Of a stretch of 64,000 nucleotides of DNA, positions 34,804 through 63,695 are shown piece by piece (position 1 is the stretch's first letter; every line of letters begins with the position of its first letter). The position numbers were made by a program, and so were the translations under genes. Source of the DNA: Macrostomum lignano. Its lineage: Eukaryota. The stretch lies in contig NIVC01000347.1 of the NCBI GenBank assembly GCA_002269645.1, forward strand, positions 1 through 64,000, written 5' to 3'. Under the pieces are notes generated by a model. It was given only the letters and a program-made list of their open reading frames with translations. It was not told where the DNA came from and searched no databases.

Positions 34804-35123
34804 ATCGATATTTATAAAGCTTTTCGTTCAGAAAATTAGGATTCTATGTAAATTTTTTATTCTCCGTATATTTTCACGCGTCTTGTGATTGAAATACATT
34901 AGAATGCCACGGCTCGGCTCTTTGGTTTTAGAAGTCTATCTTATCATTCTTAACTGACTGTTTAGCAAATATTCGTAACAGAGATGATAAAACAGGTTCA
35001 TAAAAGCAAATATTGGAGCTGTGTCATGCATTTTTGTGACTTTTAAATACAGGAAATGTACGTAGAATAAAAAATTGACATAGAATTCTAATTTTCTGAA
35101 CGAAAAGCTTTATAAATATCGAT
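34804..35123. mobile_element. MITE/foldback with ~60-bp inverted repeats
   Basis: 34804-34863 is the reverse complement of 35064-35123 with 2 mismatches (ATCGATATTTATAAAGCTTTTCGTTCAGAAAATTAG...). Confidence 0.75.
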
Positions 35124-35776: not shown

Positions 35777-37682
35777 TCTCTACCTATAAAAATCAAAACT
35801 CTGTGTGTGTGTGTGTCTGTCTGTGTGTGGACAATTTTGATCGCTATGGACTCCTAAACTGCTCAACCAAATTACACCAAACTTTACACCCACCCTAAAC
35901 TTACTACAGAGAATGTCTTAGGCTACCTTTAAATTTCCTAGACTCAAGTCTTCCTACCTAAAAGTACAAAAAACTGCTCAAAATGTGCGATTATTTTACT
36001 TAATCCTCCATTGCGCCACTCCACTTCTACTGATTCTTTTCAAATTTAACACAGATAATCTTAAACTATTTTGGCACAATAATGTAAAATTTAAAGTATC
36101 AAAATTAATCCTGAAAGCCGCTGTGCACTTTTAAAGTTAGGCTGTTTTTTTCAATGTAGCAACCACCCCAACCTCCTCCCACCTGCCTCTCTTTCCCAAT
36201 ACCAATCTGGCCCAGATGTGTAAAAGGGTTTCAAAATTGACTAACTTTCAGCTGCCATAAGTTTGCTCCAAGTAAAGCAATTGACTTCAAACTTGATACA
36301 ATTCTTTATTGACTTATTCTTTGTCTAAATGTAAAGTTTCAACTCTCTAACTCAATCAGAACAGAAACTGTAAGCATGTGAAGTTTGTCTGCTTTTTCTG
36401 TTGTTTGTGCCACTCACTCACTCATTCCCCCAGAGCCAGACGATGGGTCAGGCAATAGAGCTCAATGTACATAGCAAATGTACAGTGTTTTGGAATAACT
36501 TTATTTATAACCTTCTCTGCACCCCGAGAGTGGAGAGGCTAGGTTTAGCCATAACAGTTTAGTGACAAATCTGTATTGGCAAACTCTGCAGCAGTTTAAC
36601 AGTAGATGGCAATTGGCAAATCGAGGGAATCCAGCATGGTTTGTAAAAGCGAGAGATTTATGAAAAGGCGATGCGATGCAGTGCAATACAACCCTACTAA
36701 ATTAGGCACACCATGGAAATTTTAGGGTTCTTTTAAAGGTACTGTGTAAATATTAAATGGCCTCCTAAGAAATGCGTATTTCCATGGTTGTTAGACTGAT
36801 GCAGACTGCAGTGGAGCTGGAGATATACAAATTCCTTTCAGGGCTACAAATTGGCAAGAAAGATGACGTGATCAAAGCATGAGAACAACCATGAGAGTAC
36901 TACATCCCACAAACTGGCTTTCCAAGCAGGTATGGGTAGACTTTTACCTCAAAGGCCAGATAAAGAATCTAGCTCATAGCTGAGGGGCAGATGAAAGTGG
37001 AAAGAAGAAGGAATAGACGATTCGAAGAGAGGAGAGGCGACAGAGGGGATAAAAGAAAAGATAAAAGATAATAGGAGAGATGAGGGGGTGAGGACGATGA
37101 GAGAGAGGGGAGAAGAGGGGAGAGAGGAAAAGCGAGAGGAGAGAGTAGAGATGAGAGAGCAGAGAGGAGACAGCAGAGAGGAGAGCAGAGAGGAAACAGG
37201 TGAAAGAAGAGATGAGAGAGTAAAGGGAAGAGAGAAGAGATAAAGATACATCTCTACATCTCTAAGGTTGTAAAGATGAGATAGGTGGAAGGAGAGATGA
37301 GAAATGAGAGATGAGAGATAACGGAGAGAGGAGAGTGGAGTGAGAGAAGAGAGGGAGACAGAGTATAGAAAAGGGAAGAGAAGAGAAAAGAAGAAGGGAG
37401 AAAGGAAAGTGAGGAGTCAAAAGAGGGGAAAGAAAAGAGTACAGAGGAGAGAGGTGAGAGAACATATAAAACAGAGATGCCAGATTAAAGAGGGGGATGA
37501 GAGAGCAGAGATGAGAGTGAACAGATAAAAGATGGGAGAGTAGAGAGAACAGAGGAGAGGTTACAGAGACAAGAGGAGAGAGGAGAGACAAAGGTAGAGA
37601 AGTGAGTGAGGAGAGAGGAGAGGAAAGAGGAGAATGGAGAGGGGAGAGAGTAGAAAGAGGAGGAGAGATAAGAGAGAAAGAC

Positions 37683-37761
<79 letters not shown>

Positions 37762-38593
37762 GGGAGTAGAGAGAAATGAGAAGAGATAAGAGAGAAAAGA
37801 TAAAAGAAGAGAAAGGAAAGATGAGAGAGCAAAGACGAGAGAGAAAAGAGGTGAGGGAATAGACGAGAGAAGAGAGGAGAGATGAGAGAGTAGAGGAGAG
37901 AGTTAAGAGAAAAGAGAAATGAATAGAAAGGAGAATGGAGATCAGAGAGAAGAGGGGGTGAGAGGAGAGATGAGAGAGTAGAGGAGAGAGTTAAGAGAAA
38001 AGAGAAATGAATAGAAAGGAGAATGAAGATCAGAGAGAAGAGGGGGTGAGAGGAGAGAGGAGAGAGGAGAGGAAAAAGAAAACGAAAAAGTAGAGAGGAG
38101 AGGGGAGAGGAGAGAGAAAAGAAGAGACAAGAGATGAGATAAGAGAGATGAAAGAGAAGAGAGATGAGGGAAGATACAAGAGAAGAGGGGAGAGAGGAAA
38201 GACGAGGGACAAGAGAGATGAGAGGAAACAAAGAGATGATAGAAATTTTAAAGGATCCAAGGGATGTAGGGAGAGTCAGGGAGAGACCAGAGTTTAGCAA
38301 TATATGTTTTAGAGTCAGACAGACATTGCCTGACATTCTGCGTAGTACCTCAGCCAACAATGTCTCAAACCCTAATTTTACACAAATGTGCTCCATTTTA
38401 TTTCCACCTCTTTCTTTACAAGTTTGAACAAGTTTAACAAACAATATTTAACAAGATCCAACAATATTTAACAAGTTTTAACAAGATTAACAAGTTTTTG
38501 TTTGTGTATGGCCTTAGATTTCAGAATACATGCAAAAGTAGTTCTGGGTATTAGAATTCCACGGGTTCAAAATCCGCGGGTTTCAACAGCTTG
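35777..38593 (+). mobile_element. Non-autonomous Helitron-like composite element, copy 1
   Basis: A|TC 5' end followed by TATAAAAATCAAAACTCTG(TG)n(TCTG)n, a Lep1-like layout. 3' GC-rich CCACGGG...CCGCGGG then CAGCTTG|T. Homologous end to end with 41424-44128. Confidence 0.7.
37688..37758 (+). repeat. (GA)n microsatellite, ~35 units
   Basis: Direct reading. Confidence 0.98.
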
Positions 38594-39302
38594 TTCTCAC
38601 ATAAGGATAAGCACAAAGAAACAGACTCAATGTCAACATTCAGCTTATCAAAATACAATTATGTTGCACATATGGTTGTTGCCTAGCACTTGAGCTTGAT
38701 GAGGCACCCAAATAACCAATAGGTACAACTTCCTCAATGCTAGCATTGAACAAATCTGATTCTGATGTTGTGGCAAGGATGGACTTGGCAGATGATAAAA
38801 CTGCTTGTCAGCACTGCTTGTTACAAGTAGACATTGCAGTTGATAAGGCTGATTGGCTGAACTTGTAATTAGAAGCAAATTCATTTAATAATTGAGTGAA
38901 ATGATGACTTGCTTAAAAAACTATAGAACAAGAAAAAAATTATCTAACTTGAATTTGAAGTACATTATACCTAAAATAAACAGACAACTAATAGCTAAAA
39001 TTTGAATTAATTTGAAAGCTTATATATAAGGGTTCTTACATATTCTATTGGCTTGTGAATTATTACTCAGATATGCTCCTATCTATATTTACAAAAATGT
39101 TAAATTGTTGTTTAAAAAGAAAAAAGAAAAACAGTATTTAAGAGTTTTTTGACTTACAGTGTGCTGATATACACAAAGCAAGTCTATTTAAGGAACCAAA
39201 CAAAACTGCACTACATGACATAAAAACAGCAAACTCAGTATGAAATTAAAAAAAACAGTAATACAAGTAGCAATACAATAGTACTATTTTAATTTCTTTA
39301 TA

Positions 39303-39305
<3 letters not shown>

Positions 39306-39334
<29 letters not shown>

Positions 39335-39562
39335 GTTACGCCCCATGCTAGCCACAGGAGTAGCCAAAAGGGGGGAGTGTCAAATCACGCATTTCAGAGC
39401 TAGGTCTCTAATGTGCTTCACACCGGCTGCCTGGCTAGGTGCTTGCGCATCTTCAAAAAGGTGGTCAATGTAGCGGGCTGATTGTCCCTGGCCTTGCCTG
39501 CGCGGTCCCTGTGGTGTCCACAGCAAGACATCCTGCAGCGGTCTTAACAGAGGACTTAACAA
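39306..39562 (-). mobile_element. 5'-truncated RTE/RTEX-like LINE 3' end
   Basis: DVLLWTPQGPRRQGQGQSARYIDHLFED matches the RTE-type C-terminal LLW.P..G.R..GRP..TYID pattern. It is followed by an (ATT)n tail. Confidence 0.75.
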
Positions 39563-40211
39563 TTCTATTTTATATTAGTCACATGATGCATAATGCATAA
39601 CTATATATTATATACATATACAAGCTAAGTATAATATTCTTTATTAGGATATTTATACTATAATATAACCTATCAGCTACAAATAAAAAAGGATAAAAGA
39701 ATAATGCCTATATTTAAACAAAAAAGCATTCAGTAAAATTGTTTAGTGAATATAATGATATAAAGCAAAAGCAAAAATTAAGTGCAAAAATCAACATTTA
39801 AATGAAAACACCAGCTGTCACTTAAAATGGCGCATACTTCTAAGCTCAAACCTTAATCTGATTCCTCAAAAGCATTGGCCGCAACACTAGCTAGCCCTTT
39901 TGTCCTTTTGCCATTTTGTAGTTGCTATATTCATTTGTCATTCAGTACCCTTAGAATGTAGTTGGCTTGCAGCAGGCATTTGCTTTAGTGCATCACCAAG
40001 AGTGTCATTTACAACTTTAAAGTACTTTGGTTTGTCAAATGTCCTGCCTTTGGCCTCAGCAAGTGCACCAAGGATAATATTTTTAGCCTATTTAGATAGT
40101 GCGCTTTTTGCCATGCTGTCCAAGTTTGTTATAGTTAGACCAAACACTAGAAGTGGCAATGCTTGTCAGGACTATGCTATTATTAAGAAGGTGAGCACTA
40201 TCATTTTTTAT

Positions 40212-40247
40212 GCAACATGTTTCGCCTCGCGTCAGGCATCTTCAGGC
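40212..40247 (-). ncRNA. Minimal type I hammerhead ribozyme motif (inverted copy)
   Basis: Minus strand GC-CTGAAGA-T-GCCT(GACGCG)AGGC-GAAAC-AT-GTT|GC, with a GUU triplet. Confidence 0.65.
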
Positions 40248-40390
40248 TCTTAAAATAGTCTTATCAGAATAAATCTTATCGGACTGTACAATATACTGTT
40301 AATTTATATACATTTCTGATTTTTATCGACCCATTCTTACTCTTAATTGTTAAATATAAATGAACAAATAAATCGTTACTAATTTTAAGA

Positions 40391-40426
40391 GCCTGAAGAT
40401 GCCTGACGCGAGGTGAAACATGTCGC
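40391..40426 (+). ncRNA. Minimal type I hammerhead ribozyme motif (PLE type)
   Basis: GC-CTGAAGA-T-GCCT(GACGCG)AGGT-GAAAC-AT-GTC|GC: core CUGANGA and GAAA, stem II, palindromic ACAUGU stem III, GUC cleavage triplet. Confidence 0.7.
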
Positions 40427-41423
40427 ATAAAAAATGATAGCGCTCACCTTCTTAATTCTACTTTTTCTCAGACGCACAACTTTACCACTATGCTATTATT
40501 CAATTATCTTTAGAAACTCTTGAATAAAAGGCCAGATGGTTTACTAGCCTTTTTGAAGGAATGGTTGAGTCTACTAGCAAGGCATGGAGATCTTTATCAG
40601 ATGTCACAGGCAGTTTTAGTACTGTCTCATAGTCTTGTTCTGGTAGCTCAGGATTGATACTTGCTTAGAAAGTAGCTCTAGAATTCTCTGTTGATTAGAC
40701 TCAATTCTAGACAATAAAATGAACAACTCTGACAATTGATGCTCAGTTAGTAAGAGTCCTTTTTAGTTTTTAGCAATACTAGGAGTAAATTGGGTAGTTA
40801 ATGTAGCTTGCTGACTATTAGCACTCTAAGTTGCATTGCTTATAGGACTAGAAAACTGTTCATAGACCTACCCATTTGTTGTAGATTTAGCTAGTGTGTA
40901 TGGTTCTTCATTAGATTCTTCATGATCTGTTAGAATAGTGATTGGACTAGACAATCTTGGTGGTAGACGAAATACTTCCTTTCTTTGCTAATTTTTACTT
41001 AGATTGCTTAGTCTTAGTCTTTGCCAAAGTGCTATTTTCAATTTCATCATCAATACCAAATCTATGGTTTTTGATTCTTTGGTGAGGGGCACTTTTATCA
41101 TAAGTTGTTAATGAGCTTCTAGCTTCAAACTTAGATGCCTTAGCTCTAAGAAGTTGAAGACAATTATTTTTTTTAGCTAAAAAAGTTACAATAAATGATT
41201 GCCAATATGACTTTGAAGGCAGTTTATTTGCAAGAAAGCTTTGGATATGATGGTAGTCTTTTTTTTTGGGGGGGGGGGAAGCAACCATAATTACAGAATC
41301 AACAGATGGTCTTTCATTACTAGAGTCGTGCGTCTCTATCCAAGATTTGCGAATTGTATCTACTTCTCTAGAAAAGAATTGGACTAGTAGATAAGCCAGA
41401 AAAATTATATATTTTTAATTTTA

Positions 41424-44128
<2,705 letters not shown>

Positions 44129-45758: not shown

Positions 45759-48700
45759 ATGAGTGACAAAAATTTGCATGAGCCACTGCTGAAAGACTCG
45801 CAAGATCTGCAACAGCATCCCAGCGCTATAACATCAAATGATTATGATGATGTCTTGATAGGCTACTATAAATTTAGCAGCACTGCTCACGCTGCCCTGG
45901 AACGTTTCTCTAATTGCTTCAAACAGCTGTGCATTGATGATATTGCTAAACTGGATTTTGTTCTTGAGAAGCAGCTGTTGGATCAGTCTGCTTTTGCTAG
46001 CATTGACGAGTTTCTCTTCCGGATTTTTGAAAGTAGTCAGGTAGGTATATATTGTAGTATTTGCTGAAAGAATGAAATTAGGAGTGAATGAGGCAGTCAG
46101 CTTATCAGGATGGGATGAATGGGGCAGTCAGTCCCTCAGGATGGGGTGAATGGGGCAGTCAGTCCCTCAGGATGGGGTGAATGGGGCAGCCAGTCCCTCA
46201 GGATGGGGTGAATGGGGCAGCCAGTCCCTCAGGATGGGGTGAATGGGGCAGCCAGTCCCTCAGGATGGGGTGAATGGGGCAGCCAGTCCCTCAGGATGGG
46301 GTGAATGGGGCAGCCAGTCCCTCAGGATGGGGTGAATAGTGTGGAGTCTAGCTCCAAATGAATAAGAATAAGATTGTGCACGAGTGTGTGTGAGCCTCGT
46401 AGGCCAGCTCGATCTTGGTTCGTAGCTTCCTACAGAGGCGCCAGGCCTCGGGCTTCTTTATTTATCTCTCTCTGCTTCCCAGCTTGGGGGAAGACAACCT
46501 CGTCCAGTGGCCTGGCCTCGTCCAGTGGAAACTGCAGGTAGCATTCCGACAGGTCCAGCTTGGAGAAGATCTTGCCGCCGCCAACCGCGTCGTAGAGCTC
46601 CTCTGGCGTCGGCATAGGGTAGTGGTCGATCTTCAGCTGCGGGTTCAGCGTGACCTTGTAGTCACCGCACAGTCTGATGGTCCCGTTTGGCTTGCTTACG
46701 GGCACGACCGGAGTCGCCCAGTCGCTATGCCGAACGGGCTCTATCACCCCTACTTCCTGCATCCGCTGCAACTCCGCGTCGATCTTGGACTTCAGGGCGT
46801 ACGGCACGGGTCGGGCCTTGCAGAACTTGGGCAGCGCGTCCTCTTGCAGCCGCAGCTTCACATTGTGCTGGGTGAAGTTGCCCAGGCCCGGCTCGAACAC
46901 GTCCGCAAACTTCTGCAGCAGGCCGTCCAACTCTGGTGGCGCTGTTGGCGTAGCTGAGATCTCCGGTGGAACTGGATCGCTGATGGCGAAGATCTCCTTC
47001 CAGTTCAGCCGAATGTTCCTTAGCCAGTCCCGGCCCATTAACGGGCTTGCCTTCTCTAGGCTGGTGACTATCAGGGGCAGCTCGCAAGTCTGCGTGCCGT
47101 ACTGCACTTCCACATTCGCAGACCCCAGCACTGGGATGCTCTCGCCTGTCCAGGTGCGCAGTTGAACCTCGGCGTTCTGTAGTCGCGGCCGACCCAGCTG
47201 CTTCCAGTGGTGCTTAGATACGAGGCTGGCGCAAGCTCCGGTGTCCACCTGCATCCTCAGCGGTCGCCCGTTGATGTGTAGCTGAGCACTCAGGTGCCTT
47301 TCCTTACCGCTGCAGACCTGGGAGATCCACGTCACCTCTGCCGAGTCGTCGCTTTCCCCGCCGCGGTGCTCCTCGCTCTCGTCTGGGTGAACGGCCCTGA
47401 TGGACTTTCTGTTCTTGTGGCCACTGAATTTCAAGCCGCTTTGCTGACTGCTAGGAGCCCCTCCGGCGCAGGTCTTTTGGCTCGATAGACAGACGGCCTT
47501 CAAGTGGCCCAGCTTGCCACAGGCGTGACACTTGGTGTTCCGGTGCTGGCACTCCGCCGACAGGTGCTGCCTGGAGCCACAGCGCATGCACGGCCGTCGT
47601 GGTGACGCGGCTTTACCGACCAAATTGACCTCCGGCTTGGCGCGCCAGCTGTTGGCCTCCGCTTCCGCGATTTCTGCTGCTTGAGCGATTTCCTTTGCCT
47701 TCTCGAGCGTCAAGGTGCTGACAGTCAACAACCGCTTTTGCACTTGCGGCTCCTGGAGTCCACAGACGAAGCAGTCCCGCAACGTGTCTTCCAGAAAAGT
47801 TCCGAAGTCGCAGGTCTCCGCCAGACTGCGGAGGGTGGCCAAAAACTGTGCAGCCGACTCTCCGTCCTTCTGAACTCGCTTGTAGAAGCGAAACCGCTCA
47901 GCAATGACCGGCTTCTTTGGCTGGAAGTGGTCCTTGAGTAGCTTTACCAGCTCTTCGTAGGACAGATCAGAAGGCTTCCCTGGCGAGCACAGATTTCATA
48001 GGGTTGCATAGCATTGGCGGCCGATCAATGTTAGAAAAACCGCCTTCTTTTGGCTTTCGTCCTTAATTCTGTTTGCGCTCATATAGAGGGCTACACGTTC
48101 CTCGTAGGCGCACCAGTCTTTTCCCTCCTCGAAGGGCTCGACTGTGCCGATAGCGGACATCCTCGTCGCCACTGTGGAGTCTAGCTCCAAATGAATAAGA
48201 ATAAGATTGTGCACGAGTGTGTGTGAGCCTCGTAGGCCAGCTCGATCTTGGTTCGTAGCTTCTTACAGAGGCGCCAGGCCTCGGGCTTCTTTATTTATCT
48301 CTCTCTGCTTCCCAGCTTGGGGGAAGACAACCGGCAGGCCTGTTATTGGGGGTGCGGGGTGCAGACAGACAGACTTGTGCATAGGACTTGTGCGTGCATT
48401 GGCCGTACAGTGATGACTGTAACGGCTAGACAAAGACCGGTGCCTGGTGGGACTGAGGAGTGCGAGTACGAGCTAACCGATAGACAGACACTACAAATAG
48501 GGCAGCCAGTCCCTCAGGATGGGGTGAATGGGGCAGCCAGTCCCTCAGGATGGGGTGAATGGGGCAGCCAGTCCCTCAGGATGGGGTGAATGGGGCAGCC
48601 AGTCCCTCAGGATGGGGTGAATGGGGCAGCCAGTCCCTCAGGATGGGGTGAATGGGGCAGCCAGTCCCTCATGAATATCTGTTGCTGAAAGCAGGGCTGC

Positions 48701-51700
48701 TGAACCCTCCTCTCCAACAGGTGACCGTGAGCAGGCTCATGACCACAATGGCTGAGGATGATCGCTACCGTGAGTTGCGACAGAGCATCACAGACTTGTT
48801 CCGGGTGACTCGCAGCGACAGCCTTCGGCGCTACCTGCAGCCGGGGAGCTTCGTAACAGCCCAGACGCTGACGAGAGACCTGCACTGCAGCCTGCTGCTG
48901 TCCAACTTTGACCTGTTCAACTCGGACACGTTCCAGCCTCGCCGACATCTGGTTGAGGGCTACATCGAAAAAATGGGGGATGCTGACCGGGGCAACGTCA
49001 TCAGGGGTTACTCTGGTCTGCTGCAGCTCGCGGGGCTGACCCAGCTGGACCAGTATAGGACTACAGTGAGTCTGCAACCCTCCCAGATCGGCAGCTATCC
49101 ACAAATGCACAGTGACACACCAGACACAAAAAAGCATAGAGTGACACACCAGACACAAAAAGCATAGAGTGACACACCAGACACAAAAAGCATAGAGTGA
49201 CACACCAGATAAAAATAAGCATAGAGTGACACACCAGACACAAATAGCATAGAGTGACACAACAGACACAAATAAGCATAGAGTGACACACCAGACACAA
49301 AAAAGCATAGAGTGACACACCAGATACAAAAAGCATAGAGTGACACACCAGACACAAAAAGCATAGAGTGACACACCAGACACAAATAAGCATAGAGTGA
49401 CACACCAGACACAAAAAGCATATAGTGACACACCAGACACAAAAAGCATAGAGTGACACACCAGAGAGTGACACACCAGACACAAAAAGCATAGAGTGAC
49501 ACACCAGATACAAATAAGCATAGAGTGACACACCAGAAACAAATAGGCATAGAGTGACACACCAGACACAAAAAAGCACAAAGTGACACACCAGACACAA
49601 ATGCAATGAGACACACCAGACACATGCATAGAGACACACCAGACACAAATGCATAGAGACACTAGACACATGCATAGAGTGACACACCAGACACATTGCA
49701 TAGAGACACACCAGACACATGCATAGAGACACACCAGACACATGCATAGAGACACATCAGACACATGCATAGACACACCAGACACATGCATAGACACACC
49801 AGACACAAATGCATAGAGACACACCAGACACAAATCCAATGAGACACACCAGGCACAAATGCATAGAGACACACCAGACACATGCATAGAGACGCACCAG
49901 ACACATGCATAGACACACCAGACACATGCATAGACACACCAGACACAAATCCAATGAGACACACCAGGCACAAATGCATAGAGACACACCAGACACATGC
50001 ATAGAGACGCACCAGACACATGCATAGACACACCAGACACAAATGCATAGAGACACACCAGACACATGCATAGAGACACACCAGACACATGCATAGAGAC
50101 ACACCAGACACATGCATAGAGACACACCAGACACATGCATAGACACACCAGACACAAATGCATAGAGACACACCAGACACAAATGCATAGAGACACACCA
50201 GACACAAATGCATAGAGACACACCAGACACATGCATAGACACACCAGAAACAAATGCATAGAGACACACCAGACACAAATGCAATGAGACACACCAGACA
50301 CAAATGCAATGAGACACACCAGACACAAATGCATAGAGACACATCAGACACATGCATAGAGACACACCAGACACATGCATAGAGACACACCAGACACATG
50401 CATAGAGACACACCAGACACATGCATAGAGACACACCAGACACAAATGCATAGAGACACACCAGACACATGCATAGACACACCAGACACAAATGCATAGA
50501 GACACCAGACACATGCATAGAGACACACCAGACACATGCATAGAGACACACCAGACACAAATGCATAGAGACACACCAGACACATGCATAGACACACCAG
50601 ACACAAATTCACTCTGTCCCCCACCTCTGCTCCACCCGCAGTCGGAGATTCTCCGCACCGCCCTGGATCGAGTCAGGGACCGCAGAATTGAGGAGGTCCT
50701 GCGCTCGATTCTGGAGCCTCGCGACGGCTTCCAGCTGCTTCGCCTTGGCCAGCTCATCGCATTCTGCTTGGGCCAGCCGGCCCTGACAGTGGAGCCCAGC
50801 CCGCCCGGCTTCATCCGCAGCTTCCTCCGCGGCCTCATCCAGCAGTGCAACCCGGCCAATAATGCCCGAATGACTGGCGTCGGTCCCAGCTCTGTTGCTA
50901 TGCAATTCGTGCTCAGACTGCGCTCCTCTGTGCTGGTTGTTGACGAATACCCGGGCGGTCAGCCGAGCACCAACTTGAGCCGCCTCATCTGCATGTTTCA
51001 GCAGGACCGCGCCGAGGCCGTCAACCTGGCCGATTACCAGGTGTACGTGGCACCCTACTGCGCTGACGAGTGCACCAGGGCTCAGCATTTTGGCAGCGAC
51101 GAGAATCTAATGACACTGTTTGCCAATGAGCAGCTCAATAATGTGAGCTGATCTGACATTTATTGACACCTGACAGTCATTTGACGCATCTGACACCCAC
51201 CTGACACCTACCTAAACTCACCTGACACTTACCTAAACTCACCTGACACCTACCTAAACTCACCTGACACCTACCTAAACTCACCTGACACCTACCTAAA
51301 CTCACCTGACGCCTACCTAAACTCACCTGACACCTACCTAAACTCACCTGACACCTACCTAAACTCACCTGACACCTACCTAAACTCACCTGACACCTAC
51401 CTAAACTCACCTGACACCTACCTAAACTCACCTGACACCTACCTAAACTCACCTGACACCTACCTAAACTCACCTGACACCTACCTAAACTCACCTGACA
51501 CCTACCTAAACTCACCTGACGCCTACCTAAACTCACCTGACTCCTACCTAAACTCACCTGAAACCTACTGAAACTCACCTGACTCCTACCTAAACTCACC
51601 TGAAACCTACTAAAACTCACCTGACTCCTACCTAAACTCACCTGAAACCTACTGAAACTCACCTGACACCTACCTGAACTCACCTGACACCTACATAACC

Positions 51701-52112
51701 TCACCTGACGCCTACCTAAACTCACCTGACACCTACATAACCTCACCTGACGCCCACTGAAATCCCACAGCCCTCAGTCCGAGCCGTGGTATTTTTCATT
51801 GGCGCAGACATGGCTGCCAAATTGGACCAGTCAAGCAGTCTGGAGAGCCGCATGCTGAAGGCCTGTTTCGGTCAGCCACGCTGCGAAGTGCTCATGCTCA
51901 TGGACGAAGGCGTGGACCTGTCCGAAAAGGCCCAGTCGCGAGTGAACTGGCAACAAGCCAACCGGTTCGTGCTGTCTGTTCCTGACGATGAAATTGAATG
52001 GCGCAACTTCCTGGTACGACTGGCCAACCTGCCTGGGCCGCCGCTGCCTCCGCAAACGCCAATGTTTGACCAGCCGGAGTCTGTCAACAGCGTCTCCGTT
52101 GTTGCAGTGTAG
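45759..52112 (+). CDS. 489-aa protein, putative death-fold (CARD-like) N-terminus + TIR/SEFIR-like C-terminus, 4 exons
   Basis: Exons 45759-46040, 48721-49065, 50642-51142 and 51771-52112 with canonical GT-AG sites, all phase 0, giving an open frame. The gene model is strong. Domain identity is inferred only from secondary-structure-like patterning. Confidence 0.75.
46340..48495 (-). mobile_element. Internally deleted Mag-type Ty3/Gypsy LTR retrotransposon (2156 bp)
   Basis: Full 5' LTR 48173-48495 (TG..CA); truncated 3' LTR 46340-46499; 5-bp TSD AATAG (46335-46339 / 48496-48500). Single gag-pro-RT frame from ATG 48160 with one TGA at 47996-47998, two Cys/His knuckles, MQVDTGA protease, and RT ending at LDLSECYLQFPLDE. 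Confidence 0.95.
48158..48171 (-). other. Primer binding site, tRNA-Ser(GCU)-like
   Basis: TGGCGACGAGGATG is complementary to the tRNA-Ser 3' end CATCCTCGTCGCCA. The gag ATG lies inside it. Confidence 0.8.
49107..50610 (+). repeat. ~22-29-bp minisatellite (GACACACCAGACACA[A/T]..GCATAGA) filling intron 2
   Basis: Two sub-arrays: ..AAAAAGCATAGAGTGACAC.. and then ..ATGCATAGAGACAC... Source of the CVWCVS/CLVCL ORFs. Confidence 0.97.
51180..51755 (+). repeat. 21-bp minisatellite CACCTGACACCTACCTAAACT filling intron 3
   Basis: ~27 units; the shadow ORF repeats SLGRCQV. Confidence 0.97.
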
Positions 52113-54625
52113 AATTTCTACTACTCAACTGGAATTTTTTCTCAACCATTAATTTGAAAATCGAATTATTTGAGTTTCTCATGTATCAAACAAGTGTCAA
52201 TCAGTTGTTTGATAATCCTTTTGATGATTCAATACTCATTTGAAAGCGCCAAAGGTTTTTAGAACACATTATAAAACCGCTCTGTGTGTTTTCGGTTTGT
52301 TTTGTTGTTATTCCAGACTATAATTGTAGCTTTTTTAAAGAGAATTTTCATTCTCTAAAACCGTTTCCATTGTAAATGAAAAAAACCATCGTCAGCTCTA
52401 TTAATTACATTGTTGTTTTCTGTGTTTAAAATTTTAAGCTATTAGCGACACACTGGTTAAAAAGACAGTTTAAAGCTTGGAGTTGTGCACTTCTATTTTG
52501 ACACGTTTGATTGTCCTGTTTTGATATTGATATTTTGCTAAGCGTTATTTAAATATCAGTTTCTTCCCGTGTTGTTTGTCTATTCCAGGTTTTTTTATTA
52601 ATTATCATTCGCGTTTCTCTGCAGCTTTTATTGTTGTCCTTTTTTTTAACGGGCTAGCTTCCGTGTTAATATAAACATTGTAAAGTAACATGACTTAATA
52701 AGTACGAAATAAGTACGAAGGGTACTTTGTTTACTGTGAGCGACGGGAATGTCCGAAGCCATGCCAAGAATGATTTGACATCCTGAGTAAATGGCATTAC
52801 TGCCCATTCCGCCGACTCCCCTGAGCAGGCACACAAGCGCACGGATACGTACGCAGTTATACGCACATGACCTAACTTTATCTGTCATTTTCAAGGCATG
52901 TACACTTCACTGTGCCTTGTGGGGTTGGCTCTCAACACCGTTAATTGCACGAGCAGAGCCAAGCCGAGATTCCAATTTAGCCCCTAATTAATGGAATCGA
53001 GCCTGGAGTTTAAAAGTATTATCAAGTTTTTACTACTTAAAATGTCAAATTGTTTTGTAGTTTTACCATTTAGCTGAGCAAATGTGCAAGGAATTTTGGC
53101 TGAAATTTCAGCTTATTTGGACTTTCCTGTCGTTCACAGTAAACGCAGGTCAGAATACCTGCAAACTCACCCTCTCGTTTGCTATATACACCCTTACTTT
53201 AATGAACTTCATTAATTTCAAGCGTAGCTCTTTGAGTTTTTTTATTTTTTATAATTGTTCTTTGTAGTGCATTAGGTACTTCGGGTGTGTCATAAGTAAT
53301 GTCGCTGATGTGAAAACAGACGAACTTGCAATCGCAGATAAACAAAACTGTACCACTCAACAATATAGAGTCCCCCAATATCAATCACCCTCTGGCAGTG
53401 CTCATATAGCTTGTCCACCTCAGCCTGCAGGTGTTTTTAATCCAACAGCCATAACCAGTGCAACGCGGCCTGTTTAACCTCTTCATGATTTGCGAAACTC
53501 CTCTTGGAAAAGTCAGCCTTTAGTCATTGGAACAGAAATCTGTCGCACAAGTTGAGGTCCGGGCTATAGGGACTCTGTCAGAGCAGATTCACTCGCCGTG
53601 CAGGTAGAAAATCCGAAACAGGCTTACAGGTGTGCGACCGTGCGGTGTCCACCTGCCACAGAACCTCGTCCAGGAGACATGGAATTTGACCGAAGAGTGC
53701 GCCAAAGGACCCCAGTGTGCCGGGAAAAAGCGGATAAAAACTACTGACAATCGAACTTGACGTTTAACCCTCGATGAGACATCTTTGTTTGGCGTAAAGG
53801 CCACCAGCAGCATGGTCTTCTTGTCCGAGACGGACCTCGTGGTCACGGTCGGCAGCAGACCCCAGCTCCCAACCAGCAGCGATTGTCTGCCTTGCTGCCC
53901 TTGCCATCCAGGTGGAGCCAGCTTTCATCCTCAGCAACCAGGCAGTTTAGGATGTCATTCAAGCCCCGGCTGCTAAACACCTTGCGGATCTGCTTGGTGC
54001 AGGCGTCTTGTCGAGATTCATGGTTATTTTTGTTCGCTGCATAGACGATTTTTCATCGCGTTGCACTTGCTAAATCTGCTTGGCGTATTCTTGCGATAGC
54101 TTGGGCCATAAACAACCTATGCACGTCTCAAATGCACTGCTATTGCTTCACTAAGTATACTTTGCAGCTACACTACCCACAAATCCATGTGCCTACATAT
54201 TTTAGACAGAGGCCTGCAGTGACATTACTTATGACACACCCGAAGTATAAAGTAAGTTTTTTAGGGAAATTGTGAAAGTAACGTCAATACGAGCGTAGTA
54301 TGAGCGATTAAGGAATTAACGAAATCTTATGTATGTTTGTTTAAAAAACTACGAGCACTTAAAAATAAACAACGATTATGTTCTTGAAAGCAAGGAAACA
54401 ATTCTGCTTCGATCTATGCTTAAACTGCTTCTACAGAAGAAGAAAATTACAGCGCTGTGGAAATCTCCGAAAAACCAAGGATAGCATTGCATTGTATTTG
54501 TCGTCAGCTTTTATACTAAAAATTTTCTCTGACAGGTAGGCTTTGGATAGTGCCAATGATTCTTCTAGAAACACAATGTAATTGTTCAGATTCGAGTGGT
54601 TTGTGGCAATAAAATCCGTAAAGTC

Positions 54626-55095
54626 GTGCTGAAGGAGGCGAAGGAGGTCCTCGATCGGTCGCTGGCAGTTCGACAATTAGAGGATCGGGTCGAGGAACAT
54701 GCAAGGGACCATGGATGTTCAGGGATGAATCATGCATAGCAGATTTCAAGGACTCATTCGTCCATGATTCTGGGTCTAGGGCTCATATTCTCACGCGTTT
54801 GGCTAATTGAAGAAGCAGCTTGGACGTTGCGACTATATATTAAGCAGTTTATCGAGCTGGGTTTGGATAGAGTGGAAGGCATTCAAGCTCGAGTCGCTGA
54901 TGAAGCTACTTACGGAAAACAAGCAGAGATGCTGCATCGCTTGAAATTATGTAAAGTTCTTGTTCTGAATTCTTTCTAGTGAGGACAGCTGGTTTGACCA
55001 CTTCCCTGGTGAACAGCGAGAAACACTTGACTGTCGTGGTTCCATGCAGTGAAGGAGGTCGATCAGCAGCTGTGCTGTGATTGGTCGGGAGGCAG
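54626..55095 (+). pseudogene. Decayed inverted paralogous fragment of the IFIT-like gene 3' region
   Basis: GTGCTGAAGGAGGCGAAGGAGGTCCTCGATCGGTCGCTGGCAGTTCG, GAAGGCATTCAAGCTCGAGTCGCTGATGAAGCT and GTGAGGACAGCTGG match the minus strand of 57245-56790, with indels. Confidence 0.9.
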
Positions 55096-55759
55096 ACGTG
55101 TAAACGCCCGAACTCTCACTTCCAGACCGCAAGTCTGCAAGGGAACAATTTATTTCTCATTTACTGTTGCTGCAGGCTCCTCTTATAGTAGTTCCAGTGC
55201 GCGTAGTTCTCTTCTTCGAATCTGGAATTACATGTAGCCGTACACGAGTGCAGATTTTCTTTGCGAAAATTATTCAGTCTAACACAGTGATGCGCCCTAA
55301 TAATCAATTTACTATCGGCAATCAGGTCCACCAGAAAGTTCCCGTCTTCTTTCAGCTAATCATGATTTATCTCTTGTGTCATACATAGCAACATCATCAT
55401 GCTTTTATAAATTTACTGGGTGTGTACTCTACTTATAGTAGGGATTTATGAATGGTCTAACTCTACAGGCCGGAGTCGGAGCTGATGAGGCCACTCCGAG
55501 TTGCCAGGTAAAGTGGCACTCAAAGTCTTTCAATATCAAAATTCGGGAACATTATGTGATGTTTAACGCTCGTATTGTGCATGACAGAAGTAGGTTTTCT
55601 GGAACGTTAATCCCAGCGATCATCGAACTAGGTTATAACCATTTTTACACTGCCTTTTATCGATGGAGATGGATTAAAACTGTTTCAGTGCTTGTTTCCA
55701 CCAAGTATTGCAAGAAAATCGCCTGCTGAATTTTTTAAATGTATCAATAGTGATATTAT

Positions 55760-56627: not shown

Positions 56628-59256
56628 TTAAGCCTCTCGTTGCAACTCAGACTTATTCTTCTGGTTCTGAGCACCAGAAGCAGATAAACTTGAGACGCCA
56701 ACTCCATCGGAGAAGACGGCCCACGTCTCCTCAGCGAACTCTGCTGCCAGATGCGCCACGTCGTAGGCCGCCCTTCGACACTCTCCGCCTCCCGACCAAT
56801 CAGATTTGAGCTGCTGATTGAGCCCCTTGACTGCAATCTCAGTCGAGTGCTTCTCGCTGTTTACTGGGTAGACCCAGCGGACAATCCAGCTGTCCTCACT
56901 TGACAGAATTCTGTGCTCACGACTCACCATGAAGTTAAAGACGTCTCTGGTGTCTCTCGATTGGTGAAAGTTGGGATCAATTCGCTTCAATTCTTCTAGC
57001 AGGCATTTTCGCACCTTTTCAAGCGATGCAGCATCTTTGTTTTCTTTGAGCAGCTTCATCAGCGACTCGAGCTCGAATGCCTTCCGCTCTGTCTCCGAAC
57101 TCAGCTGTTTGAACTGCTTTTTATAGTCATCTCCAAGCTGCTTCTTTAACTGGCCAAACGCGTGAGGGTATGAAAACTCTCGACCCGATCCCTTAAGCCG
57201 AACTGCCAGCGACCGATCGAGGACTTCCTTTGCCTCCTTCAGCACCGAGACGATCATGTTGTTCATTTCTTGAAGTCCTATGTCAGTCTCTTTTATCTGC
57301 AGCTTCGTCATGAGAAATCGATTCGATCTCATGAGGTTTCCGCGATCGCCAGCGCCTTCAGCTGACCGAGTCGAGCCCGCCTTGCTCGTTAGCAGATTGA
57401 GCTCCAAGAACTCAAGCAATTCTGAGCTTTACAGACTTCTTGAAATCGTCCGAATCCAATTCAGTTTCAATAAAGAAGCTGCTGGAATCGTCCAGAGTGA
57501 GTTCGATCTTGGCGCACAGGTCGTACAATTCTCGGCGGAAGAACAGCGGGTCTTTTCCAGCTTGAGATGATGTTGACGCATCCGCCATCACCCTTTCGGC
57601 AGTTTTCTGTTCGGACTTTCGACGCTCGAGAATGTCGAAAATTCGAGGAGCCGCATCGCGACATCCGCACTCGAGACACTCCATCAACTTCGTCAAATCT
57701 GAGGCGGGGTCTCTGAGTAGCGACTCAGCTATCAGTGCTTGCTTGTTCTCGTAATCACTGGACAATTTTCTAAAACTTGCAGCGGCCTTAGAAAATTCAC
57801 CATTCTTCATAAAATGGCGACCCAGATGCTCCAGAGCGAAATCGTTTTTGTCGTCTCGCCCCAGAGCCGTCCTGTAGAGGCCTTCGACGTCGAGCTGAAC
57901 TTTGAATGTCCCGATGTTTTCGGCGTACCAAGCCAGGTACTCTTCAAACCCTTCCTGATTCTGGTTCAGCAGTCGAAGAAAGTTTTCCTTCTGGTTGGGC
58001 CATATTTGGTCCAAGGTTTTCTCAGCGTCAAAGGCAGCAACGCACGATTCTACAGCCTCCTTTGTTTCTCCAATTTTCATTAGGTACATGGCCTTGTAAA
58101 ACTCGACTGTGGCGACATTTTTGTTGTAGACCCTAAAGGTTTCTCGCAGAGAGTCGTACGCGTCTACAGCTGTGTCTTTTCCCCATTGTTCTCGCTGAAG
58201 CTCTATAATTTTCAACTCAATCCAGATGTGACCCGGCTCACCTGCTTATTCCTGGCCCTCTTCAAGCAGCTGGACCGCCTCCTCTCTATGGCCGGAGCTT
58301 AGAGCTTCTTTGGAAAGCTCAAGGAAGAATCCAGGATCGTCAGATACGCTTGCCACTTCTTTAGCATCCTCAAACAGCCGATTTCTAATGGCCTTTAAAT
58401 TGTTTGAGTTTGACTTTCTTAAAAGATACCGAAACACTTTCAGGCAAATTATGTACACGACTTGTGACTGCTCTTTCTGCTCTTTATCCATTCCTAGTAG
58501 AAGATTTGCAGCCTTTTCGGCCAAGCCTTGGCACAGACTGGAATACCGGTAGTTGTGCAGAATGGCTTCAGCATAGTTCGCGTAGAATGTAGCCGTCGTG
58601 AGACCTTTCTTCTCACCGACGTCTTTTGCCCTTCTCCATAGGTCCAACTGAACTCTGTCAGCGTGTTTATTAGCCGTCTGCCTATCGCAACGAGCTCTTA
58701 AGTAGGCTTCGCCATAGAGCCAGTAGAAGTTGCACGCCTTGCTGTGGTCCAATAGGATCCTTGACGCCTCGGCGAAGGCACTGGCGCCAATGGCGTATTT
58801 CATTGGACCAAAGCAGTCGAAAGCGACTCCCTTCGCTGCAAACGCTCGAGCCTTGCTGTTTGGGTCGAGTTCGTTCAGTCTCTGCATGTCTGTTTCGAGT
58901 TCTTCAGGTCTTAGTGGCCTGCCTTTTCCTCTGCTCAGCTGCTTGAGGTGCAGCATGTCGGCCCTGATAACCAACTCGCTTGACACCATGCAGTCTTCCT
59001 GACTGTCTTGCTGTATTTGTGCATCAATTTCCAACGCTTCATCGAGATGTTTCTTGGCCAAGTCGAACTTTTTGACGCGTCTGCGAGTGTACAGGTATGC
59101 TATGGTTGCCAGGTATGCGGCCTTTTTGTGAGGCTCGCGCGTTATCTTTTTCTTCGTCTTTTCGATCACTTCATCGATGTTTGAGTTTGTGCAGTTATCA
59201 TCTGGTTTCCAGGTGAAATGGCACTCCAGCTGGTCTAGCGACTGCAGGCTAGTCAT
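56628..59256 (-). pseudogene. IFIT-like TPR protein with extra C-terminal domain (~875 codons, intronless); one in-frame TAA and one frameshift
   Basis: N-terminus SLDQLECHFTW...LATIAYL...ELVIRAD...AKGVAFDCFGPMKYAIGASAFAEA parallels IFIT SLEQLRCHFTW...NLLAYV...LVTWGN...[23 protein letters not shown] (recalled). ORFs 58246..59256 and 57412..58215 are in one frame separated only by TAA 58246-58248. ORF 56628..57419 continues after a +1 shift near 57420-57435. Confidence 0.82.
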
Positions 59257-59296
59257 GGATATTTGGAAGTTTTAGTTCCTTGTTGGCTCGTGAAAC

Positions 59297-59303
59297 ATTT
59301 ATA
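59297..59303 (-). promoter_or_regulatory. Candidate TATA box of the IFIT-like gene
   Basis: TATAAAT 41 nt upstream of the ATG at 59256. Confidence 0.45.
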
Positions 59304-60259
59304 GCATTTATGTGCCCTTAAGAGCAAGCATATATGCATTATATGCCAGCTTCAAGTACTGTCTACTGCTTAAAATGAGACTTGTGCGCTCCCATTATGT
59401 TCAGCTGTGATTGTAGAAGGTATGAATGTACGTAATAGTAGACGTTTATTTCTCTTACCCAATTTTCATTGCACTTCAACGTACAGCTTTAACTGTTCAA
59501 AAGGCTATATACAATATTTTAGTACCTTGTATGCCCAGAATGCGCATTTATTCGTGCAAGCATTATATACAAGTTGAAAGTACTGTCAGCAGCCAAAATG
59601 AGACGAATCCACTTTCAAAATGCTCTTTAATGGCCGGTGGGTATGAATGTTTGCAGCAGAAAGTTCTGTTTGCCTTACTGAAATCTGCACTTTACGAAAT
59701 TATTATTCTAAGGACTGTTTAAGACAGTTGCATTTGCAGTGGAGCAGCCAAAAGGGGAGATGGGGGAGACGAAATCCGTTCTCCAAAGTGGTAGGTGGCG
59801 CTACACCCTCCGCTTGTCATCCAGCATGAATGTAAAGTATAGAAAGACGCAAAATTTTTCCTAACCCACTTAACGAACTTTCACTGTCCAGTCCAGAGCG
59901 CCGTACAGCTGATCTGTGTACGCTATACAAGACAGACCACTGTACAGACAATAAATGAAATTTAATGGAAATTTTTCCGGAAAGAAGGTTTTTTCAAGCC
60001 ATAAGAAATCATTTCTACTGCATTTAGATTTTTACATGTATATCTTTTTACATGTGTTTCTGGCAATGTTTTTTGCGGAATATTCGTACACATTTGCCAA
60101 TACGAGTAAAAAGCCAAGACGATGTAAAAATTGTATTCAGTTCAGAGTCATTCTTATGCTTAGATCCATAATTTTATTCTCTTGCTCCAACCTCAACATT
60201 GTTACCCCTCCTTTGTGGGAAGAAATGGGATGCTCCGAGGGCACGGATAGCGGCTGCTG

Positions 60260-62830
60260 CTACTACATATCGCGCCAAAAGTGGTTGATTTTCAGATGTT
60301 TTGACGCAAAAAACGCAAATTATACTACTATCTGAAAATGAAGTAAGTTCTGATTCAGGATTCAGGATTCAGTGCATCTAAAAGAGGCTGTTGGGAGCTT
60401 CAGAACTGAGAATAACGTTTAAAATAGCATCAATGGCATGATTTAGTAATCGAAATCAATCGAACACTGAAAACTTTAAGTTTAATAGCAGACTGTGTTT
60501 TTAGCCCCAATTTTTACAGTGTCTATACAATATTTCCCCAGCTTCTTGGGCAATATACATGCCTATTTGAATGATTAAACAGCATTTGTGATGATTTATT
60601 AGCTAACATTATTATCTCTATTGATAAAATGACAGATTTCGATCCATAAAGTAAGCATTTTAACGTTAAAAATCGAAAAAATGAGGAAAACTCGTGTTTT
60701 TCATGAAAAAGTTTGCATTTCTAATAATTTAGCCTCTATTAACCATTTCTTAGGCTGGGCTGGCTTGTGGACTTCCGTGTGGGATCATTCTTGCTTCGAA
60801 GCCGTCTCAAGTAAAGTTGAAACGGCATTTGGGCAAATTAGCTGTTGAAATTATGGTTTCCAGTGATGAAATTACTGATTTTGATCAACAAAGTCTAACT
60901 TTTAATGTTAAAATTAAAGAAACAGGAGAAAATTCGCCTTTTATGAAATGACGGAATTCCAACTTGGAGAGGTCCGTGGGTATTTCATTCCTGCTTCGAG
61001 CGATCGAACTTTCATAGAGTCTGAAAGCTTTTAGTGAGAGGGTAGTGGAAGCGATAGAATTGGCATAGCAGCACGTTTTTGGGCGGGTGGACTTCACTAC
61101 TTCTAGTATACCGCATTGGTTATAGTGCCAAAGTATTTCTTTGACAAAACACATCTATAGAATTCAGTCTCGGAATTGTATGCAGAGGAGACACTGATTC
61201 ATAGGCTGTGTACATTGACAGATGCAGGGGTATTGGGTCGATGCAGTTGGAGGTTGACTCGGATTTGCTCAGATTCGTGGGGTTGATGTGTGCATTGAAA
61301 GTTAGTTTCTTGCTAACTGGGGCGGCATGGATGACGTAATTGGAGAAGAGGGGTTTTGCTGAATGAGGTTTAATATAGGGTCCGTGCTGTGAAAAGATCT
61401 GTTTGTACACTGAAAATGGAGAGAGGGGTCGAAATTCCTTGGCATTTAGAAGGGTGCAGAGAGAAACAGGGACGAGTGGTTCAATTCGATTTGCTATATA
61501 GGGGTCTGCTGAGGGGTGGATGTTTTCGAACAAGTCTTGGGGTTGAATTTTGAATATGGCCGGAGATAAAGGGTGATTCAACATGCAACATAATTAATTC
61601 CATAGTGTACACCAGCGTCAGTGGCATATTTTGCGGATAAAGTGCGACAAGGGTCTTGTATCATCCGCACTGTGATACGAAACATATAAAACATTGCTTT
61701 CACAGTCTTGAATTTAGAGACCGACTAAATAAATCGTATACGTATCATATATATACGTCTTTTGAAAACTTTTTTGACTCGGGGAGAGGGGTTGGGAATG
61801 ACGTAATTGTCTCGGAGTGGCGACGAGGGCTGAATTCTAGAGGGATGAAGTATAAAAGGAGTGGATATAACAGTGTGGACAGCAATTTTTGGCTAACTCA
61901 TGCCTCCTCCGCCAATTTTGGGGATGGGCGGCGGTTTCTGCGTACACTGTTTGCTTTTTGAGGGTCAGCGGAATATGAAGAGTTAATTCTTGGATGTGCG
62001 GCCGCTTTGCAAATTTTGGGTATAATTTGGGTGGGTGGGCGCTTCTGCATGCTCTCTGTTTCAACTATTGAAAATTGAAAATATTGAAAATATTTTGAAA
62101 ATATTTTGAAATACTATTGAAAATAGTTGAAAATAAACATGATATCAGCTTTTTCAATATAAAAATGTAAAATTATGAATGTAATCTTTTTCAGTAAGAA
62201 TCTCGACTTGTAAACTCTACTAATGGTAGTATGGCGTAATCAGTTACATTTGGTTTTGAGTAATTCACATATAAATATGCATATATGACGTGTTCTGTAA
62301 AACTTGGATGTTAGTTGACTCATTTGGTAGTAGGTGAGATTGTACAGTTGGCGCGCACACACCGACCCACCTCTGCGCATATACTGTGCTGTACACGTAA
62401 CAATTAGTGTTTCGAGTTGTACATATAATCTTGTGGGGTTGACGATTCAAATACGCAGAGCGGGGGCCGTCGTGTAGATTGGGGATTAATGTACATAATG
62501 TACTGTACATATAAAAATTGTCATAGAAGTAGATTAATGCGCAAGTGTACATATAGAAGGATTGTACAAGTTGACAATACACATGTAGAATTGGGATAGA
62601 CATGGAAGTAGACAATGTACATTTACAATTTGAGATAGATAGGGATTAATGCAGTACATGGGATTAATGTACATATATGAGCACATGGATTATTACGACT
62701 ACATATTGCCATATCACGCTTAGGATAGCGTTGTTGTATACTACTTACTTCATTTTCAGATAGTAGTATAATTTGCGTTTTTTGCGTCAAAACATCTGAA
62801 AATCAACCACTTTTGGTGCGATATGTAGTG
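60260..62830. mobile_element. CACTA/EnSpm-like non-autonomous DNA transposon (2.57 kb)
   Basis: 88-bp TIRs at 60261-60348 and 62743-62830. Right end reads CACTACATATCGC; left end reads C(T)ACTACATATCGC. 3-bp direct repeat CTG on both flanks. Subterminal repeats GGGATTAATG at ~62482, 62642 and 62660. Confidence 0.75.
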
Positions 62831-62833
62831 CTG

Positions 62834-63695
62834 CTCTCTCTCTCTCTCTCTCTCTTCACTCCGACCTGCGGCCGCCCGCGGGAGGCCGGGTCGGGGCTGC
62901 TCTGCCACCTGGATCGTCTATAGGCGGTTTTTGGCGGCCCACCCTCCGCAGGTAATCACAGAGGAGGCTGCCCTCGCCCCCCAGCACGGTATTCCAATCA
63001 ACGCTGATGCCGGGATGCGAGCCTGGTGGTAGCCTGGGCAGGTTAGGAGCAGATGCTCGACCGAGTCCGACTCTCCACGGGTAATGTATCGGTCGTCAGT
63101 AGTGAGGCCGAATCGGTGGAGTGTGTCGCGCGTGAGCGGGGATTTGCGCGTTCTCAGCTGGCAAAGGGTGACCTGGCCCCATCTCGGGAAATCGTCGTGG
63201 CCAGGCGTCGGGCTCGGATACGGGTGCATGTGGTCTCGCGTTTTTCGCCAACCTCGGATAACATGATTGATGGCAGTCCTAGCGGCGATAGGGGTGACGG
63301 AATTAGGCTGTTGTTGAGTCTCGGTAGCTCTCCCGGCCAACTCATCAGCCGCTTCGTTCCCAGGGAGGTTAGCGTGACCCGGCACCGATTGCAAGTGAAT
63401 TTTGCAGCCACTCGGCAGGGCAGCGATATTAGCCCAGACGCATCGGGTGACATCGTCCGCCGCAACGGTCGGGCCGCGCAGAATCGTTTGGAGGCCGGCA
63501 CGGGAATCCGTGCACAGCCTGACAGTAATGGCCGGGCTGCCGCCACTACGGAGGAGCTCAGCCAGGCGGGCAAGTGCCGCTTCGATCGCAACGAGCAAAT
63601 CGCCAATTGTTCCGGCCACACTCACCCGAGTAGCAGATTACAGTCACCCATGGCCCGTCCTACCGGCCAGCGCCTGCTGCTGCTGCTGCTGCTCG
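62834..63695 (-). mobile_element. 5'-truncated RNase H-bearing non-LTR retrotransposon (I/R1/Loa-type) 3' end with (GA)n tail
   Basis: RNase H motifs LCTDSRAGL...LQSVPGHANLPGNEAADELA; QLRT...degenerate knuckle GESDSVEHLLLTCP; (TC)11 at 62834-62855 on the plus strand. Confidence 0.88.

Follow-up and report, generated by a model that had tools for sequence, protein, structure and literature searches.

An IFIT-like gene of the flatworm Macrostomum lignano: a probably disabled duplicate, and an intact copy that joins an IFIT-homologous clamp to a novel helical module

In the literature, the IFIT family is regarded as having originated in the jawed vertebrates at the same time as interferon (PMC3688568, PMC13030082). 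In a survey of 2013 the IFITs were found in jawed vertebrates only and the invertebrate matches to tetratricopeptide repeats (TPRs) were not taken as IFITs (PMC3688568), and in a review of 2026 the family is described as conserved across vertebrates (PMC13030082). The question raised by the locus described here is whether a gene of the free-living flatworm Macrostomum lignano, located at 56628-59256 on the minus strand of contig NIVC01000347.1 (GCA_002269645.1), encodes a protein of the IFIT type, and what such a protein might do. The whole stretch of DNA analysed, positions 1-64,000 of this contig, is referred to as the window. A prediction made from the letters of the window (the original prediction) had placed here a long IFIT-like protein of an invertebrate. 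Its host is indeed an invertebrate, and its remark that IFITs are best known from jawed vertebrates agrees with the literature just cited, except that automatic names at NCBI already label hemichordate proteins as IFIT1-like; the Macrostomum proteins are all named "hypothetical". The literature on invertebrate IFITs, as far as retrieved by our search, consisted mostly of papers on IFITM, and Macrostomum and IFIT were mentioned together in one paper only, in unrelated places. Judged from the sequence and the predicted structure, the intact form of the gene combines a clamp homologous to IFITs with a novel module: it resembles the IFITs in N-terminal motif, profile similarity and predicted fold, and departs from them in the pocket residues and in size.

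The coding region runs on the minus strand, as do all its parts given below, from an ATG at 59256 to a stop codon at 56630-56628, and according to the list of open reading frames (ORFs) and their translation the product begins with MTSLQSLDQLECHFTW, in which the CHFTW motif occupies residues 12-16. The region is thus present where predicted, but its frame is broken at two sites. Piece 1 of the coding sequence (58249-59256; codons 1-336), which carries the CHFTW motif at codons 12-16 and covers the first two thirds of the IFIT-like module, is identical to P0068, a 336-aa product that is the sole annotation of the locus. It ends at a premature in-frame TAA (58246-58248; codon 337), which is a Lys codon in the intact copy and results from a change of A to T at 58248. 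Piece 2 (57416-58245) continues in the frame of piece 1 through the end of the IFIT-like module into the start of a C-terminal module (the C-module), colinear with the intact paralogues, up to an extra T (57414-57415; GCT-T-GAG) that is missing in both other copies of the gene and shifts the frame by +1 behind codon 614. Piece 3 (56628-57413) holds, in the shifted frame, the remaining part of the C-module and a short tail. When bridged over both lesions, the window product is 874 aa in length and can be divided into an IFIT-homologous TPR clamp module (57703-59256; approximately residues 1-518), as delimited by profile searches of the PDB and by an AlphaFold model together with Foldseek, and a novel all-helical C-module (56709-57702; from ECLECGCRD to WAVFS), as delimited by a family alignment (A5), by the model and by a conversion tract of matching extent.

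The close relatives of the window protein in the databases are only "hypothetical proteins" of Macrostomum lignano. The intact copy, here called g3 (P0069; PAA75149.1; Mlig006963g3; 877 aa; annotated "hypothetical protein"), lies on contig NIVC01000900.1, and its coding sequence is one uninterrupted, intronless ORF of 2634 nt, in good agreement with the prediction of an intronless gene for a protein of nearly double IFIT length. The window locus and the g3 locus (L003) share synteny for more than 14 kb with 98.9-99.8% identity, and we assign with high confidence the window locus as copy g1 of Mlig006963, a very recent duplicate of g3 (approximately 0.7% diverged). The two coding sequences differ by 19 substitutions (0.72%), a rate equal to that of the flanks (0.7-0.8%). 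Besides the replacement of the Lys codon 337 by TAA and the inserted T, g1 carries a 6-bp in-frame deletion near 58867 (codons 131-132). A short intron as the cause of the in-frame stop was ruled out, as the intact copy reads AAA (Lys) at this codon within an uninterrupted ORF. The third contig, NIVC01004191.1 (copy g2; L007), has the sequence of g3 except for single-base deletions at five g1/g3 variable sites, the nonsense site included, and because of these consensus deletions the only product annotated there is of 393 aa. The g2 copy resembles a consensus artefact of collapsed, near-identical copies.

The window gene might then be regarded as intact and functional, with the stop and the frameshift being errors of long-read assembly. 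Two observations speak in this direction and against a true loss of function: the frameshift is a single extra T, present in the window contig alone, which could be either real or an assembly error, and the same assembly shows consensus indels elsewhere, as in NIVC01004191.1 with its deletions at the five variable sites of this very gene. The nonsense change, however, is a substitution and not an indel, and the consensus of the third contig also breaks at that site, as if the reads carried both A and T. Since consensus deletions at g1/g3 variable sites are expected if the reads carry both variants, we infer that the substitution variants of g1 are real, including the nonsense change. In addition, the window copy contains the 6-bp deletion and evolves at the rate of its non-coding flanks. 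An intact window gene is unlikely on these grounds, and the copy is very probably disabled in truth by the stop and the frameshift; the locus should be annotated as a recently disabled duplicate.

The IFIT relationship begins at the N-terminus, where residues 7-16 (LDQLECHFTW), which correspond to the L..L.CHFTW motif capping the first TPR of IFITs, align with residues 13-27 of IFIT1 and 13-22 of IFIT5. Within the family of long-form proteins F14 and W16 are invariant, C12 is nearly so and H13 is kept in most members, and the CHFTW signature is IFIT-like as originally noticed. In searches of the PDB, the single sequence (phmmer) gave IFIT1 as the best match with E=0.027, and a profile of three Macrostomum proteins gave IFIT5 with E=5.9e-5 (7-182 against 13-182). 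A profile of ten long-form proteins, from which bridging sequences were left out (A6), matched IFIT5 (E=1.3e-5) and no other entry, and a wider profile of 23 sequences (A3) matched IFIT5 (7.3e-28), IFIT1 (1.8e-22), IFIT2 (5.7e-17) and IFIT3 (7e-12), each in one colinear stretch of approximately 310 residues from the CHFTW motif onward. After HMMER search of 1.84 billion representative proteins with the Macrostomum profile, just 66 proteins were identified at E<=1e-3, and among these were a stingray IFIT5-like protein (2.4e-6), a Saccoglossus "antiviral innate immune response effector IFIT1-like" protein (2.9e-5) and a Ptychodera IFIT1-like protein (8.8e-4), together with IFIT-sized proteins from a centipede and an ostracod. 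Word-indexed searches were uninformative on the phyletic spread of both modules, that with the N-module profile being swamped by bacterial TPR proteins and that with the C-module profile returning only three known M. lignano proteins.

The IFIT fold consists of three TPR subdomains and a pivot, which make a closed clamp ('TPR eddy') and not an open superhelix. When modelled by AlphaFold2 from an alignment of 37 sequences, the intact protein was an all-helical repeat solenoid with a mean predicted local distance difference test score (pLDDT) of 89.6 and a predicted template modelling score (pTM) of 0.77. The top Foldseek match in the PDB was IFIT5 with 5'-triphosphate RNA (4hot_A; E=1.7e-6), and IFIT5 and IFIT1 were the only long natural proteins that superposed globally on the model: their chains gave template modelling (TM) scores of 0.56-0.65 on the target with root-mean-square deviations of 6-9 Å over approximately 520-560 columns (for IFIT5, 0.61-0.65 and 6-7 Å). 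Ctr9, Ski3, IFT-A, OGT and SPINDLY reached comparable E-values, but mostly with TM scores of 0.1-0.25 and in no case with 0.5. The N-terminal module is thus predicted to form a closed TPR clamp like that of IFIT5 and IFIT1.

Some of the search results would also be expected of a generic TPR protein, in which CHFTW and the IFIT matches had come about by chance or by repeat composition. The TPR pattern claimed originally is weak by Pfam, which gave no TPR above threshold in the window protein and a single sub-threshold match to TPR_2, besides one to DUF1722 that is likewise below threshold; the match of the single sequence to IFIT1 has E=0.027 only; and profile A3 also scores strongly with designed consensus TPRs. 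The designed proteins, however, match only via one canonical TPR pair at 269-336, whereas every IFIT match is a single colinear stretch starting at the N-terminal motif. Furthermore, A6 is specific for IFIT5 within the PDB, the global superposition is limited to IFIT5 and IFIT1, and named IFITs appear in a set of only 66 matches out of 1.84 billion proteins. We therefore hold a generic TPR origin to be highly improbable. Because both the profile searches and the global fold match, the N-terminal part of approximately 520 residues appears to have the clamp architecture of IFITs beyond its mere content of TPRs, and we consider with high confidence, from the sequence comparison, that it is a true IFIT homologue, as the original prediction had held.

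The second half of the protein turned out to be different from what had been expected. The extra length, originally ascribed to more TPRs and a non-TPR tail, is rather due to a discrete, conserved helical module of approximately 330 residues (approximately 525-852 of the intact protein), which is found across the family. Its alignment shows the motifs ECLxLGNCD, LFFSRxxYExCA, RxxRLxxTK, LD, YPHA, REHxI..AW...W....N..KH and YDVAHxAAEFAE, with E, W, W, A, A, F and E as invariant residues. When modelled alone, the C-module gave pLDDT 85.1 and pTM 0.85 with approximately 18 helices. Foldseek search of the PDB with this model gave no significant neighbour (best E=0.047, TM below 0.3), the search of predicted viral structures (BFVD) gave no match, and comparison with Pfam and PADLOC gave no consistent match. 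The label DUF1722 (PF08349), which UniRef attaches to P0001, was deemed spurious, as the scores were 17-19 bits against a cut-off of 22.5 and were obtained for 2 of 19 members only.

The comparison with P0001 (Mlig031348g1), a 64%-identical paralogue that is also carried on the contig of the window gene, indicates how the C-module has evolved. Nucleotide identity between the two is approximately 0.6 up to codon ~530, with saturated synonymous divergence (dS), rises to approximately 0.95 up to codon ~850, and collapses in the tails; within the tract of high identity the ratio of nonsynonymous to synonymous divergence (dN/dS) is 0.31. On this nucleotide pattern, the high-identity tract is a gene-conversion tract that coincides with the C-module. 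Because the tract matches the module and because the paralogues place the module in other contexts, the C-module is seen by these comparisons as a discrete evolutionary unit that is exchanged between paralogues by gene conversion.

The M. lignano paralogues P0001, P0002, P0017, P0036, P0072 and P0076 have either the two-module plan or the C-module alone. Their N-modules are strongly diverged (25-57% identity) and their added parts vary, including a repeat tail in P0001. Several of the added parts are of RNA-binding type: P0017 has an RRM ahead of its IFIT-like part (Pfam RRM_1, E=5.5e-9); P0076, which is without an IFIT-like part and is named C3H1-type zinc-finger protein in UniRef, has TIS11-like CxFAHG CCCH fingers behind the C-module; and P0002 (Mlig030191g2) and P0036 have RGG-repeat tails. 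These unions with RRM, CCCH and RGG parts, as read from the sequences, provide the strongest indirect indication of an action of the family on RNA. The relatives are intronless ORFs, several of them in tandem or on one contig, and form in M. lignano at least 10 distinct clusters at 50% identity. Many more relatives without introns, part of them arranged in tandem, were found on long contigs of the ENA assemblies ERZ25074608 and ERZ26859043 (P0004-P0016 and others); these contigs have a coverage of approximately 85-110x, and the neighbours of the relatives are only retroelement genes and paralogues. The closest relatives outside Macrostomum are at 10001-12610 and 16666-18762 of L005 (two paralogues, 4 kb apart) and at 10001-11833 and 11853-12572 of L004, where an ORF of 610 aa is followed after 20 nt by one of 239 aa that may continue it.

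Whether the clamp could bind RNA was considered by mapping the residues of the IFIT5 pocket through a profile alignment to IFIT5, which is less secure beyond residue ~200, with the residue roles taken from PMC9677429 (Table 5) and PMC13197388. Five positions are kept in the window protein (IFIT5 E33 as E29, Y156 as Y154, R186 as R189, K257 as K273, R260 as R276), and two are changed to Lys (T37 to K33, Q41 to K37). The basic residues K37, K142, R189 and K273 are invariant or almost invariant among the long-form proteins, and three of them, K37, R189 and K273, correspond in the alignment to Q41, R186 and K257, which line the channel of IFIT5 (PMC9677429, PMC13197388). The net charge and isoelectric point of each segment were uninformative, the IFITs themselves being acidic overall. 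RNA binding by the N-module is plausible from these residues. We propose that the central channel of the IFIT-like clamp would hold a ligand of anionic nature, most probably single-stranded RNA, and that the clamp would do so with the basic set K37, K142, R189 and K273, partly different from the triphosphate pocket of IFIT5. The C-module would then be the assembly or effector part common to a family of defence type that has expanded within its lineage and diversifies fast.

Several results weigh against this proposal. The 5'-triphosphate pocket of IFIT5 is not conserved according to the same alignment: K150 is replaced by C148, Y250 by V266, R253 by I269, Y254 by I270 and Q288 by E313, and the mutation Q288E is known to cripple IFIT5 (PMC9677429). 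Specificity for 5'-triphosphate or cap is thus not supported by the sequence, and since these pocket residues are replaced, the link to the sensing of cap or 5'-triphosphate RNA, which had been drawn in the original prediction, stays an inference. No core of the interferon-stimulated response element (ISRE) type, GAAANNGAAA, was found within approximately 1 kb upstream of the gene, and the seven matches to this core in the entire window are not above chance. As to the C-module, no comparison supports the function that we propose for it. A nuclease of the HEPN type, which is a four-helix bundle with an invariant Rx4-6H motif, was considered for its REH...KH...AH region in the C-terminal ~100 residues; as the His of REH and of KH is replaced in several members, these conserved His residues are not invariant and a HEPN-type nuclease is therefore unlikely, and neither a conserved R-x4-6-H nor a structural match was found.

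The loss of the IFIT5 pocket residues could mean that the protein keeps an IFIT fold without sensing RNA 5'-ends, and works as a protein-protein scaffold or adaptor whose C-module recruits partners. IFIT2 and IFIT3 have been proposed to act in part as scaffolds or adaptors, TPR clamps often bind peptides, and the C-module is helical, without a catalytic signature, its invariant E, W, W, A, A, F and E looking structural or interface-like. It speaks against a scaffold, however, that the four basic residues are conserved in the long-form family and that paralogues have repeatedly joined these modules to the RNA-binding parts RRM, CCCH and RGG, and we regard such a role as possible but doubtful. 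The explanation that we prefer, with somewhat more confidence than doubt, is that g1 is a disabled duplicate and that the intact two-module protein is an IFIT-like RNA clamp with a C-module, belonging to a family of defence type. For the narrower proposal that the family serves in RNA surveillance our expectation is lower, clearly on the sceptical side of even.

The flatworm CHFTW cap, the IFIT-specific profile similarity and the predicted IFIT5/IFIT1 clamp fold, taken together with the IFIT-sized relatives in hemichordates, a centipede and an ostracod, indicate that the IFIT scaffold is older than interferon. A more extended scenario would be that RNA clamps of the IFIT type predate both vertebrates and interferon and serve, in flatworms and some relatives, as the sensor half of a modular, interferon-independent RNA surveillance family, in which the C-module acts as a novel domain for assembly or effector function that also occurs in the paralogues with RRM, CCCH or RGG parts and is homogenized by gene conversion; we put this forward only tentatively and think it, as a whole, rather unlikely. 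The C-module, which travels with RNA-binding domains, is a candidate for the partner of an IFIT-like sensor before interferon signalling, and K37, K142, R189 and K273 offer testable residues for the timing of 5'-end recognition. The proteins in question can already be found in public databases, automatic annotation has already named invertebrate IFIT-likes, and the copy in the window is very probably a pseudogene.

Near the gene, a TATAAAT box read from the sequence at 59296-59304 (minus strand), approximately 45 nt upstream of the ATG, is a possible core promoter. Upstream of the gene, the two copies differ in the orientation of a stretch of 1.76 kb (61071-62829 of the window, 7235-8993 of L003), which is inverted in one relative to the other, the loci being otherwise colinear and 99.8% identical. 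Approximately 1.5 kb past the 3' end of the gene lies a decayed, inverted fragment of a C-module (54608-55101, plus strand), detected by blastn and tblastn against the paralogues, which matches P0001 residues ~667-747; the 98.9% alignment with the intact-copy locus passes through it, and the fragment is presumably common to both copies.

Elsewhere in the window, a DDX60-like helicase gene in several ORF pieces is located at 12619-18272 (minus strand), approximately 38 kb from the IFIT-like gene, with PIN-like_DDX60 (PF23002, E=4.4e-30) at 17439-18272 and a DEAD core (E=5.5e-22) at 13642-15603. In vertebrates, DDX60 is known as an antiviral helicase that is stimulated by interferon. Retroelements and satellite arrays take up the interval from this gene to the IFIT-like gene. 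Retroelement stretches are found at 22050-29392, 46430-47842 and 62918-63625 (all on the minus strand); the window contains a long LTR retroelement of the Ty3/gypsy type, with a pol-like ORF of 2113 aa and a gag-like ORF of 389 aa, together with another retroelement fragment and a fragment of RNase H (PF00075, E=4.9e-6). The large low-complexity or satellite arrays at approximately 30000-44000 and 48000-52000, with an extreme strand skew (GC skew up to 0.6, AT skew up to 0.5), yield long spurious ORFs rich in Ser/Leu or Cys/Val, and related arrays of 83-92% identity occupy the syntenic position next to g3.

A typical IFIT is of ~430-500 aa, consists of TPRs only, has a positively charged central channel whose conserved residues bind RNA 5'-ends (in IFIT5 T37, Q41, K150, R186, Y250, R253, Y254, R260 and Q288), binds 5'-triphosphate or cap0 RNA, is antiviral, and is induced by interferon or virus through ISRE promoters. 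Compared with the vertebrate IFITs (IFIT5, IFIT1/ISG56, IFIT2 and IFIT3), the flatworm protein is unlike in its length (877 against approximately 470 aa), which is owing to the C-module of approximately 330 aa, in the replacement of K150, Y250, R253, Y254 and Q288, and in its overall identity of approximately 14-15% only. To our knowledge there is no interferon in flatworms, and an ISRE was not seen upstream of the gene. The likeness extends over the N-terminal L..L.CHFTW cap motif, a colinear similarity over approximately 170-310 residues with E down to 7e-28 by the family profile, a predicted closed TPR clamp with TM 0.56-0.65 on IFIT5/IFIT1, the conserved equivalents of IFIT5 E33, Y156, R186, K257 and R260, a single-exon coding sequence, and a lineage-specific expansion with gene conversion between paralogues. 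The short IFIT-like proteins of invertebrates, namely Saccoglossus kowalevskii XP_006812281.1 ('IFIT1-like'), Ptychodera flava XP_070570677.1, Strigamia T1JLK3 and Darwinula A0A7R9FSK1, differ from the flatworm proteins in being 400-560 aa in length (a tandem of two in Darwinula) and in having no C-module, but have in common with them the motif at the N-terminus and the initial ~200-340 residues, in which the blocks KG..F..FG..KY..A and G.AF...R.RR are contained, and in this respect they are the sequence bridges between the flatworm proteins and the vertebrate IFITs.

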